9,177 nucleotides of DNA from Vitrella brassicaformis CCMP3155 (taxonomy: Eukaryota; Protista; Chromerida), in the NCBI GenBank assembly GCA_001179505.1, contig CDMY01000944.1, positions 1 to 9,177 on the forward strand, in the 5' to 3' direction. This document shows positions 1,104 through 5,692 of the stretch, one piece after another. Every line of letters begins with the position of its first letter. Position 1 is the stretch's first letter. The notes under the pieces were generated by a model. The model made no database searches and had not been told where the DNA came from. It saw only the letters and a program-made list of their open reading frames with translations. Made by a program: the position numbers and the translations under genes.

Positions 1104-1128
1104 TTGTAACAAAATGTATATACACTGA
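1104..1128 (-). mobile_element. 5' terminus of a second Helitron-like element (TCAGTGTATATACATTTTGTTACAA) reading leftward; 3' end not securely located
   Basis: Matches 2090-2113 except for one extra A. It starts with TC immediately after the CTAG end of the element at 1129-2113. Confidence 0.55.
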
Positions 1129-1175
1129 CTAGCGGTAGCCCGTGCTTCGCGCGGGGAGCATTAGATAAATCACAG

Positions 1176-1645
1176 GCAGACCCAAAGAGCTGAGCGACAG
1201 ATCAGAGACGACTGTTGTTTGTGCGCCAAAAATGGAGACACACGAACAAGATGTGTTGGCATTGAAGATCACATACACAATCCCATACACAGAAAACAGC
1301 CAAGGATCGGAAGCCCATATATACACAATGACAACAGGCAGCGATAGAGCCACAGAAGTCTTCGCATTAGCAGAGACACGTGAGAGACACGCGTTTGAAA
1401 CAGCACTGCTTCTGTCAAAGGCCAGATATATTAGATGTAGGAAGCTCAGGAAAACAACGGCAAAAGGCTTTCGTTGAGAAGCCTCGTGTGGGGCGCTCTC
1501 TGCTGGCAGCCATGTGATGGGCTTCACTCGACCGCAGCTCAGGGCGAACCACGCACAGTCATGTTGGAGAGCACCGACACACATCCCCCCCCTCCCGGCA
1601 GGCGTCAGTGAGGAATGCCGTCAGATGAAGGACTTTGAGGCTTGA
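1176..1645 (+). pseudogene. Probable captured gene fragment inside the Helitron: exon 1176-1436 plus exon 1602-1645 (or unspliced frame to 1477); weakly PH-like fold
   Basis: The frame is open from 1169 to 1477 with a cacag acceptor at 1175. A phase-1 donor (gtagga, 1437) joins in frame to the acceptor ccccccctcccggcag (1601), giving ...SKARYIRCVSEECRQMKDFEA*. HIYTMTT/TEVFAL/ETRERHAFETALL resembles a strand-strand-helix PH C-terminus (by eye). Confidence 0.35.
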
Positions 1646-1871
1646 TCTCTGACCCATTCGCTTGGCTGACTGGTGGTCTGTCGTTGGGGCTGCTCGTGCT
1701 GGCCCAACGGAGATGACCGATAAACAAAACGACCCGCTGCGGTCACCACAGAACAATCACTGCGCCGACCAGCAAAGTAGACACGCCTCTCATCGCCGTC
1801 GCTTCTGTTGCTTGATGTGAAGAGGCCGTCGCTCTTTGTCAAACTGCTCTTACAGGGTGCGTGAGGAAATG

Positions 1872-1984
1872 CACACGCACACACATAAACACAGAGACAC
1901 AGAGACACACAGACACACAGACACACAGACACACAGACACACACACACACAGACACACACAGACAGAGAGAGAGAGAGAGAGAC
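1872..1984. repeat. Compound microsatellite (CA)n / (GACACACA)n / (GA)n inside the Helitron
   Basis: Directly visible in the sequence. Confidence 0.95.
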
Positions 1985-2366
1985 CGTGCGACTTTGATGA
2001 GACTGTGCGACTTTGATCTCTAGCCTTGTTCGCTGCTCTCACCCAGCTGAGCCGTCAGTAGCTGCTCTCACCCAAGCGGACGACGACCGTTGTAACAAAT
2101 GTATATACACTGATTGAAAGATTCTCGTCGATGATCTTCTGAGACGTCATTCATTCAATGTTTTCCCCACATCTACAGATAGGCTTCGTTGCCTTCAAAT
2201 GCCTCATCGGGGAGATGTTCTCTCCACTGACACGTTGCATCATGAATGGCTACAGACGTCGACGCGTCACCTCCGGTTCGCTCCGTAGGTGAAAATAGAA
2301 GAGCCGAACATCATACACTAGTCTTCGGGGTAGATGGATGTCGTCCGAGAGAGAGGCGAACACCTA

Positions 2367-2666
2367 NNNNNNNNNNNNNNNNNNNNNNNNNNNNNNNNNN
2401 NNNNNNNNNNNNNNNNNNNNNNNNNNNNNNNNNNNNNNNNNNNNNNNNNNNNNNNNNNNNNNNNNNNNNNNNNNNNNNNNNNNNNNNNNNNNNNNNNNNN
2501 NNNNNNNNNNNNNNNNNNNNNNNNNNNNNNNNNNNNNNNNNNNNNNNNNNNNNNNNNNNNNNNNNNNNNNNNNNNNNNNNNNNNNNNNNNNNNNNNNNNN
2601 NNNNNNNNNNNNNNNNNNNNNNNNNNNNNNNNNNNNNNNNNNNNNNNNNNNNNNNNNNNNNNNNNN
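2367..2666. other. Assembly gap (300 N)
   Basis: Run of N. The four ORF-track entries spanning it are artefacts. Confidence 0.99.
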
Positions 2667-2750
2667 GTCGGTGGTCGTCTGCTGCCGTATGGATGGACAA
2701 ATCAGTCATGTCTCGGGCGATGTCCTCATGCAATGAACTCGCCGACGCAT

Positions 2751-3036
2751 CTATTGACCCTTCCCTGGGGAGTTTTTTGGTGTCTTTTTTTTCGTCCCGT
2801 TTGCCTTGTCCCGGTGCGTCCCGTTTGCGGTGCTCACGGAGATCGGATAAAAATGCAACTGGGCCAGAAGTTTTTGCTGTGGCTCGCCCAGTGGGCAAGA
2901 AGCGTCCGATCGGGGTTCGTTACTATCCGTTTTTTCTCTGTTCGCTAAGGGATGTAGCTTGACACACTGAAGCAAGGCGAGTCAGTGAGGTTGGTTGGGA
3001 GAGATTCTCTTCCGTAGAAGCGCTCACCGCGCCCAT
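2751..3036 (-). CDS. Tentative small spliced gene: exon 3036-3028 (MGA), intron 3027-2967, exon 2966-2751 (CVKLHPLANREKTD...); ~74 aa, 3' structure uncertain
   Basis: A 61-nt intron with GTGAGC donor, CTGAC branch, pyrimidine tract and CAG acceptor. The ATG has an upstream in-frame stop. A second GTGAGC at 2837 could change the C-terminus. Confidence 0.3.
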
Positions 3037-3438
3037 TGGCTTTACTCAGTGACGTGCTGACTCTGACTGCCTCGTGAAGGATGGTTGGGAGCGTGCTTGA
3101 GATCGGAACGGCCACCTCGAGATCTGCTGGAGCACACGCAACGTGACGGCAAGTGACGTCTTGACGTGTTCAAGCGAACAATCAGAAAGGTTTAACTGCA
3201 CCCCCCCAATTTACGAGGGCGTTGCGGCCTTTCAGCAAAGCTTTCGGCTTCCTTTTTTCACCCAAAGGCTTACTAAGATCTTCGCGGGGCTCCATCCGCC
3301 GCACCTTCACTCCACGCCAGGTCCGCCCATCCGTCCCTTCTACGGTCTAGCCACATCTCCCCCCGTTTCTCCCTCTTGTGCTGTCTATGTGCGTGTGTGT
3401 TCCTGTTGTCCTTTTGTTGTTGTCGGCGCGGCAGGCCA

Positions 3439-4195
3439 ATGCATCCCGGCGTGCCCAGATCACTGGTCCTCCTCGGCCTCGTCCTCATACTAGGCTTCTC
3501 GTCGGCGGCAGTCGTTGTCTCCCGACCAAACAACACCAGCCGCCCACGCCCATCCCGTTCCTACGGCGCAGGTGTGTCCCTGCTGACTTCAAATGCCCTG
3601 GATATTTCCTCGCGAAAGAGTGGGCTCACCTCCGCGACAGATGGCGATCAGCTAGGAGCAAATGATGGCAAAACTTCTTCACTTAGCCAGTTCGTTCTCG
3701 GTCCATCTCGCCCGACCATGGAGCCTGAACCAGGCATGCAGGCGTACATGGACCCGTATCCCAAGTACAAGAAGTATCGACACCGCAGGGGCGGGGATGA
3801 CTATGACGAGCATGATGATGACGACGAGTATTCCAAGTACAAGAAGTATCGACACCGCAAGGGCGGGGATGACTATGACGAGCATGATGATGACGACGAC
3901 GAGTATTCCAAGTACAAGAAGTATCGACACCGCAAGGGCGGGGATGACGATGACGAGCATGATGATGACGACGACGAGTATTCCAAGTACAAGAAGTATC
4001 GACACCGCAAGGGCGGGGATGACGATGACGAGCATGATGATGACGAGTACTCCAAGTACAAGTATCGAAACAAAGCCAAGCACCGCGCCATTCACGAGGT
4101 TTCTAGAAAGACATTCGACTGTTCGTCAAATTACGGTCTTCGACTGCTGCGATCAGGTATACAAGAAGCATCTCCGCGCGTCATTCCTTGCATAG
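3439..4195 (+). CDS. Secreted repeat protein: signal peptide plus 4 x (KYKKYRHRKGGDD(Y/D)DEHDDDDDEYS); preferred model 3439-4098 joined to 4157-4195 (232 aa), unspliced alternative ends at 4302
   Basis: ATG 3439 follows a cag acceptor at 3434 and starts MHPGVPRSLVLLGLVLILGFSSAAVVVS (hydrophobic signal). In-frame tandem repeats follow. A 58-nt GT-AG intron (4099-4156) gives the ending HEVYKKHLRASFLA*, which echoes the repeat motif. Confidence 0.85.
3761..4068 (+). repeat. Coding tandem repeat, units of 72, 75, 75 and 69 nt plus a partial fifth
   Basis: Units start at 3761, 3833, 3908, 3983 and 4052 (CCAAGTACAAG). Length differences are whole GAT/GAC codons, so the frame is preserved. Confidence 0.97.
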
Positions 4196-4842
4196 TGGAC
4201 GATCCGCATTTGTCTTATGCAAGCTGGCGAACCAAGATTTGGGTCACTCCACCCGCACGAGACATAGTGTATGTGTCGACTGACGTGCCGATAAGAACTT
4301 AGAGTAGGGAAGCAATGATGGAACGCTTCGATGTGTCACTTACACGACAAATCCTTTGTTAAGATATCCCGAACGATCCATGCCGAAATACGGACACTTC
4401 ACGATGTCGAGGGCCGATAATATCATAAATGAGAAGTCCCACACACAACAAACAAAACAACATCACACGCCGTCAAATCTACCCATCTACAATGGGGTGG
4501 GTTCGTGCTCGTCTGTCTGTTGCGTTGGCGCGGAGTGCGAGTATGTGTGTGCGTGGTGGGCGGCGCCGCTGGGAGATACGACAGGCGGGCGCTGAGGATG
4601 GTGCTGGCATGTTTGTCGCATGATTGAGGGTTGGTCGATGTTGACGCAGTTCGTTTCATGAGAGAGCGACAGACTCCGCCTGCCGTTGCGCTATGAGTTA
4701 ACGTATGTCACACCCATCTACAATCCATGCGTACTGTCTACCCTGGCTGTTCATAGATTGTACGTTGACGAGCGCTGGCTAAACGTCTGTGCGCATGACA
4801 TGTGTTGATAAAATGTACAGAAGTGAAATGTATGAATACATA

Positions 4843-5437
4843 TTAGACACTACGTTGACGGATGCATGGTCTTGAATGGTCGGGAAGGAGAGACACTCGA
4901 AGCGTGGATCGACTGGAGGACCTTCGCATCAAAGCAGTGCTCACCTGTTCGACTTGGTTGAATTGCGCAATCCACATTCAAGCTGCATCAAACAATTAGG
5001 AAGCCCCAAATCGCGAGAGAGTGAATCAATGGCTTGTTCTAGATGAGACATGAAAAGACGCTCACATGACATCAAATCATGGTTCACAATCACGGGAATC
5101 ATGAGAATGAATCGAAAGTTTTGTTGCACAAGATACAAAATCAGCATTGATTGAAAAGTTTGTTCGTTCTTGTTCTACTACACGCATAGGGAGACACGTG
5201 CACAGAATGAGGCATTTGAAGGCCACGTGAGTATCCAGGATGGCTCTGCAGACTTCCCTGAGACGCCCTGGCTGGTTTCCAGGTGTGGATCATCAGTTGT
5301 TCTTGTCGAGAGACAATCTGCATTAACCGTAAGACTCGTCTGTGTGTCCGTGACACTCGGCTTTTGGACTGTCTGTATCTATCATTTCATTCGGATCTCA
5401 CACCACCCCGTGCAAGCCTCCTCCCCTGATCGCACAT
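4843..5437 (-). CDS. Tentative 5-exon hypothetical protein, 110 aa (exons 5437-5402, 5317-5227, 5177-5094, 5038-4945, 4870-4843)
   Basis: Phases are consistent across four GT-AG introns (84, 49, 55 and 74 nt), but two donors are weak (gtggcc, gtgatt). No motif is recognisable, and strong + strand donors (5227, 5329) compete with this model. Confidence 0.22.
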
Positions 5438-5444
5438 TTTTTAA

Positions 5445-5590
5445 AACGTCTCAAAGGTGTCAAAACAATATTTAGAAACCGGGAAACCGCAGAAAAATAT
5501 TTAAAACAACGCAAAAAATAAAAAATTGAGGAGAAAAACCCGCCAAACAAGGGACACATTTAAAAGCCGCAAAAAAGGAAGGAGAAAACT
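5445..5590. promoter_or_regulatory. A-tract-rich intergenic patch, possible promoter or nucleosome-depleted region
   Basis: Dense A-runs interrupted by CG-containing cores, unlike the flanks. Similar patches occur near 315-345, 3230-3290 and 6365-6440. Function is inferred only. Confidence 0.3.
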
Positions 5591-5692
5591 ACGAATCTGG
5601 TTTGCCTGCCTCTTCTCCCTCCATCCCCCTCTCCCTCCCTCCCTGCCTTCACACCTCATTTGTCTGTGGTGGGCGTGGCCGTCTGTGTGTGG

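Follow-up and report, generated by a model that had tools for sequence, protein, structure and literature searches.

The question raised by this locus is whether a repeat of 24–25 nt that begins with TC, and that stands both at the apparent start of a Helitron and directly after its terminal CTAG, is a transposon terminus or a piece of the DNA into which the transposon was inserted. The stretch analyzed, here called the window, is the whole scaffold C944 (9,177 bp) of Vitrella brassicaformis CCMP3155, the genome of which comprises 72,700,666 bp in 1,064 scaffolds and was assembled from short reads (PMC4501334). Read on the minus strand, the locus has the form CTTTCAA|TCAGTGTATATACATTTGTTACAA ... 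985 nt ... CCCGCGCGAAGCACGGGCTACCGCTAG|TCAGTGTATATACATTTTGTTACAATTC, the bars enclosing positions 2113 to 1129; with its parts separated it reads CTTTCAA|TCAGTGTATATACATTTGTTACAA-CGGTCGTCG ... CCCGCGCGAAGCACGGG-CTACCG-CTAG|TCAGTGTATATACATTTTGTTACAA-TTCAATGAC. In a preliminary description the stretch between the bars had been taken for a complete TC...hairpin...CTAG element, the CTAG of which abuts a second, near-identical 5′ terminus belonging to another Helitron arranged head to tail.

The direct repeat, named X, is present as X1 at 1104–1128 and as X2 at 2090–2113, the two copies agreeing over 24/25 nt with one indel in a T-run. Two occurrences of an exact 17-mer of X were found in the window, against none in any of 200 dinucleotide-preserving shuffles. 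The edges of the repeat were sharp: alignment of the 100-nt flanks of X1 and X2 did not rise above the shuffled background, 84/2000 and 1098/2000 shuffles reaching the score, and no wider homology between the surroundings of X1 and X2 was found by local alignment, which bears out the earlier remark that the two interiors are unrelated beyond 25 bp. Genome-wide, the 17-mer gave three matches with up to one mismatch, the two in the window and one at C590:26661-26677, and a search with the 25-mer allowing up to three mismatches added only C836:15305-15329, so that X occupies four places in 72.7 Mb. Its 14-mer variants (22 matches, as against 42 for the reversed control) were no commoner than the control. 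Since the T-run is TTTT in X1 and in C836 and TTT in X2 and C590, X1 seems to be the original and X2 to have arisen at insertion.

The opposite end of the element gave a different picture. A search with the 27-nt 3′ end allowing up to three mismatches recovered five genomic copies, located in the window and on C541, C40, C534 and C366, and none with reversed-pattern controls; the exact pattern was unique to the window copy. In all five copies CTAG was followed by T and then by unrelated flank. Thus, of the termini expected from the preliminary description to recur across the genome, the 3′ end did so, and X (start TCAGTGTATATAC) was found as an end nowhere else, no other Helitron in the 72.7-Mb genome search having it alongside. 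The four copies outside the window contain a fully paired stem of 7 bp closed by a GAA loop (CCCGCGC-GAA-GCGCGGG), a 6-nt spacer and CTAG. In the window this terminus occupies 1129–1160 on the minus strand and consists of a degraded hairpin (1155 to 1139), the spacer CTACCG (1138 to 1133) and CTAG (1132 to 1129), followed by T. The hairpin-N6-CTAG arrangement described earlier is therefore shared with four other copies, but the stem in the window is mismatched by one G>A change and is not the minimum-energy fold (−4.6 kcal/mol, z 0.16). A reading with no Helitron at this place, which drew on the three matches of the 17-mer, the uniqueness of the exact 3′ pattern and the collinearity of C590 past 2113, was overturned by the 3-mismatch search for the 3′ end.

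The 5′ boundary of the family was located by comparison of the C366 and C534 copies, and a pattern search then found A|TCTAYTCTAAATAGGACAAT(S)GT in four copies. The sequence TCTAYTCTAAATAGGACAAT starts the copies on C345, C534, C40 and C366, and their upstream flanks are mutually unrelated; the family thus possesses a conserved 5′ terminus starting with TC. In agreement with insertion between A and T, which the alignment of flanks confirmed as had been anticipated, 4/4 of the 5′ flanks end in A and 5/5 of the 3′ flanks begin with T. The repeat abutting CTAG in the window is real over 24/25 nt, but the 5′ terminus of the family is TCTAYTCTAAATAGGACAAT and not X. The copy at C366:88748-95292 is 6,545 bp long, has the canonical family ends, and encodes Rep together with part of a Pif1-like helicase: an 801-aa ORF, which is the genome's best match to Helitron_like_N (E 3.8e-52) and lies on the same strand 3.7 kb upstream of the C366 3′ end, is followed downstream by a Pif1_2B domain, the element having been read in two pieces 671 nt apart. 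The partner predicted for the window element, a Rep-helicase element with the same ends, was consequently found in so far as C366 shares the 3′ end; its 5′ end is TCTAYTCTAAATAGGACAAT, not X. A 301-aa ORF further upstream in the C366 element gave no Pfam match, and this element was inserted into a (TACA)n-like tract. Also present are short derivatives, on C534 (1,687 bp) and on C40 (1,788 bp), and the copy counts of the family are lower bounds, at least the numbers given. Judged from these sequences, C366:88748-95292 is a candidate autonomous copy, and the family is best classified as a canonical Helitron family with both ends and a RepHel partner. It appears to be undescribed beyond a tally in the genome paper, the architecture itself being well known: Supplementary file 2 of that paper assigns 18,147 bp in Vitrella to "Rolling circle / Helitron", as a tally without families (PMC4501334), and literature searches turned up nothing on Vitrella Helitrons other than a tally.

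Comparison with this family showed what the window copy has kept and what it has lost. With element positions counted from 2113, the first Helitron-derived bases lie at 2074–2093 on the minus strand (ACAACGGTCGTCGTCCGCTT, element positions 21–40), which correspond to family positions 16–35 and agree with C366 in 18/20. From family position 16 on (ACAA CGGTCGTCGTCC) the window copy follows the family, and before that point stands X. The first 15 nt of the family, TCTAYTCTAAATAGG, are absent, a loss of about 15–19 nt, and the first 20 nt of the 5′ end that replaces them are identical to the DNA after the element's own CTAG. The four bases ACAA at the junction (2093 to 2090) are common to the end of X and to family positions 16–19 and constitute a microhomology. 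A family-homologous 5′ body follows on the minus strand at 1758–2066, interrupted by a microsatellite at 1872–1987; element positions 48–208 and 293–356 are 72–81% identical to C534 and 87% to the autonomous C366 copy, and positions 101–151 are 94–96% identical to the 3′-subterminal part of the C40 and C534 copies. Further in, 1291–1523 on the minus strand (element positions 591–823) is an inverted, 74%-identical copy of C370:57886-58122, a region in which no Helitron homology was found; by this likeness the segment is probably a captured fragment, and the earlier characterization of a non-autonomous element with swapped cargo was a fair one.

From family position 16 on, through the internal blocks and as far as its 3′ terminus (element positions 954–985), the window copy is thus collinear with the family. 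Its 3′ end is present, its 5′ end is lost, and it is accompanied by a duplication of 21–25 bp, so that it does not show the two family termini without target duplication. As for the claim of completeness, the element is a Helitron, its 3′ terminus being found in four other copies, but it is not complete, its first 15 nt being replaced by X. The stretch from 2093 to 1129 is a defective family member by descent and not an intact element. Since the 5′ end (LTS) was required for transposition in the Helraiser experiments (PMC4778049), the window copy, having lost this end, should be immobile. A repeat between the 3′ flank and the 5′ junction was seen at the window copy only: in the four other copies a search over at most 1.5 kb before the 3′ end gave none, that stretch reaching the 5′ junction only in C534. 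Inspection of the C534 and C366 copies, in which the 5′ part was covered, showed that their 5′ and 3′ flanks differ, with the C40, C541 and C345 copies outside this comparison.

The DNA past X1 is not a second Helitron. It contains the end of a plus-strand gene, the last coding stretch of which (823–1095, 90 aa, stop codon TAG at 1093–1095) lies outside the transposon and is the insertion target, followed by the 3′ flank of this gene, and no Helitron homology was detected there; the head-to-tail tandem of the preliminary description was thereby lost. X1 starts 9 nt past the stop codon and covers the 9–33 nt beyond it, adjoining the Helitron CTAG, and the Helitron stands 33 nt downstream of the stop. 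Within X1, 1108–1128 is certainly target, TTGT at 1104–1107 being the microhomology. X2, of 24 nt and with one T fewer, is the second target copy and occupies the place of the Helitron 5′ terminus.

The last 90 amino acids of the gene were found at 12 or more genomic loci with 46–71% amino acid identity, counted within the Vitrella assembly only, including a 447-aa ORF at C588 (1285–2625 of the fetched piece, minus strand). Searches of Pfam and of PDB sequences with this gene family gave no match, and in the ESM Atlas only AP2 leads were obtained, at 0.77–0.79. Two repeated modules, AP2-like by eye (F.VLSA..D.DRAIEMAVEYREW), can be recognized, and the family was left unnamed. The idea that this neighboring gene family is Helitron-borne was rejected for want of similarity to Helitron loci, no tblastn match below E = 2 being obtained with 16 of them. 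At 461–805, immediately upstream of the exon of this gene family, lies a 20-bp minisatellite of about 17 units (consensus TTGCCAGCAATAGGGCTCTG), which either truncates the gene copy or is intronic.

One assembled strain was available, and the pre-insertion site was therefore judged from a paralog on C836 and not from a true empty allele. This paralog is 78% identical to the window over 256 nt and carries 22/25 nt of X at the same distance from the stop codon, with no adjoining Helitron; the homology between C836 and the window stops at the outer edge of X, and X at C836:15305-15329 begins with TT, not TC. Beside X, the C836 sequence matches the X2-side flank over 4 nt (TCAA; equaled by 33/3000 null sequences) and does not match the Helitron side, and a further 9-mer match is suggestive (equaled by 53/2000 shuffles). 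These matches lend weak support to the reconstructed pre-insertion site (p about 0.01–0.03). Because X is rare in the genome, native to the 3′ flank of the gene and present at the same spot in the C836 paralog without a Helitron, it is to be read from these comparisons as duplicated target DNA and not as a Helitron terminus.

On the far side of the insertion, 2114–2366 is shared with C590, with 98% identity across the junction, and would represent the original downstream DNA of the gene. The collinearity is more extensive: C590:26513-31797 corresponds to window 1949–5668 with 91–100% identity, straight across 2113, its left limit lying inside the microsatellite 1872–1987 and the segment (about 3.7–5.3 kb) containing an extra insert of 1.2 kb in C590. 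The X2-Helitron junction is present in this duplicate locus as well, at C590:26654-26677. The duplication may be segmental, or it may reflect a haplotig or redundancy in the assembly. A scaffold gap of 300 N begins 253 nt past the insertion (2367–2666), where comparison with C590 indicates that about 465 bp are missing. The remainder of the window contains two dispersed repeats, one of about 328 bp at 2852–3179 (more than 25 copies, 87–95% identity, sometimes paired about 900 bp apart) and one of about 225 bp at 4492–4716 (more than 20 copies, 93–98% identity), as well as a 75-bp coding tandem repeat of 3.9 units at 3756–4046 in the ORF 3376–4302, rich in Tyr, Lys, His and Asp. No Rfam match was obtained in the window.

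The locus is probably occupied by one 5′-truncated non-autonomous Helitron with a canonical CTAG|T 3′ junction, a 5′ end joined through ACAA and a target duplication of 21–25 bp, as judged from a single locus (n = 1). A true target-site duplication had been named beforehand as the finding that would speak for a non-LTR insertion; the target duplication proved nearer the truth, the insert being a Helitron and not a non-LTR element. Canonical Helitron insertion produces no target duplication. A mechanism that could account for one is that Rep transferred the transposon's 3′ end to an A|T target (CAA|TCAG) that had been nicked, CTAG being placed exactly by the target T, that the normal attachment of the 5′ end then failed, and that a break arose in the opposite target strand at a distance of about 25 nt. 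As the staggered ends were filled in, X would have been copied to both sides, and host end-joining would have attached the shortened 5′ end at the 4-nt ACAA microhomology. The hairpin base pair would have been lost later, and a portion of the locus, running outward from the microsatellite inside the element, would subsequently have been duplicated to C590. It is conceivable, and proposed here tentatively, that the locus records an uncoupled Helitron integration in which the transposase joined the 3′ end only and host repair completed the 5′ side.

The same final sequence would also result from two steps, in which a complete Helitron was inserted at CAA|TCAG and its 5′ end was later broken, perhaps through an abortive Rep nick, mended by the copying of about 20 nt of X1 and rejoined at ACAA, with loss of the true 5′ terminus. 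Nothing in the sequence separates this course from the one-step event; the left flank ending in A and the right flank starting with T are those of a canonical insertion, and the ACAA microhomology suits a repair junction. It is nevertheless unlikely, two events being needed where one suffices, and under it X would still be derived from the target and the Helitron would still be one. The proposal of two head-to-tail non-autonomous Helitrons sharing X as a 24–25-nt 5′ terminus, the second reading from 1128 with other cargo, differs on both points. It has to its credit that X starts with TC, that X2 follows A and X1 follows CTAG, and that head-to-tail Helitron insertions are documented (PMC4778049). 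It is very improbable, however, for the family that owns the 3′ end has a different conserved 5′ terminus in 4/4 copies, X adjoins no other Helitron, and the diverged X of C836 begins with TT; moreover, directly after X the window element matches family positions 16–35, and past X1 come the stop codon and coding sequence of a gene, with neither family homology nor a Helitron 3′ end.

An assembly artefact is equally hard to credit. Scaffold C944 would then be chimeric at the microsatellite 1872–1987, a piece containing the gene, X1 and the Helitron 3′ end having been joined to a C590-like piece with the Helitron 5′ part and X2, and such an error might be expected of a 9.2-kb scaffold with a 300-N gap in a short-read assembly (PMC4501334), the more so as the C590 homology ends inside the microsatellite. 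Yet the two halves are Helitron sequence from a single family, correctly ordered and oriented, and the same very rare 25-mer bounds each of them, a pattern expected only for the two ends of one insertion, and the X2-Helitron junction was assembled independently in C590. Retroposition, by which a LINE enzyme would have reverse-transcribed a Helitron transcript into the site, is the remaining alternative. Truncation at the 5′ end, microhomology and a long target duplication are hallmarks of LINEs (Zingler et al. 2005, as cited in PMC4224331), and Class I elements are the dominant transposon content of Vitrella. Against it, neither end of the insert has a poly(A) or simple-repeat tail, and the insert stops exactly at CTAG next to T, which is the transposase's own junction; this origin is accordingly extremely doubtful. 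The single truncated Helitron with duplicated target therefore remains the preferred reading.

The family agrees with canonical Helitrons of the Kapitonov and Jurka type and with Helraiser/Helibat (PMC4778049) in its 5′ TC, its 3′ CTAG, its insertion between A and T and the GC-rich hairpin ending 10 nt before the 3′ end, as well as in having an autonomous partner with Rep and a Pif1-like helicase and short non-autonomous derivatives with foreign interior. The window copy departs from them: canonical Helitrons show no target duplication, whereas this copy has no 5′ terminus and a target duplication of 21–25 bp. No report of Helitrons with target duplication was found in literature searches. In bats, 5′-truncated Helitrons and abutting pairs, which can mimic new termini, are likewise known (PMC4778049, Supplementary Fig. 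4); here, unlike in the abutting pairs, the 3′ neighbor is host gene DNA and not a Helitron, and the truncated end bears the copy of that DNA. The window copy resembles LINE-1 junctions in that one end is precisely placed by an enzyme and the other is truncated and joined through microhomology, the target being duplicated over a long stretch (7–20+ bp in LINE-1), but it lacks a reverse transcriptase signature and poly(A) and has an exact DNA-transposon 3′ terminus. The likeness to LINE-1 would concern the resolution of the second junction by the host and not family membership.

A small canonical Helitron family of V. brassicaformis is thus defined by both of its ends and an autonomous partner, and the locus illustrates that a TC-starting repeat abutting CTAG can pass for a shared terminus and yet be duplicated target. 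What is unusual is that a Helitron copy has a microhomology junction at its truncated 5′ end together with a long target duplication; as a single case this is an anecdote. Recurrence of the pattern would bear on how Helitron integration is completed and how truncated copies form. Should 5′-truncated Helitrons often carry such duplications, the origin of truncated copies would be explained, and annotation pipelines that assume "no target duplication" would be misreading them.
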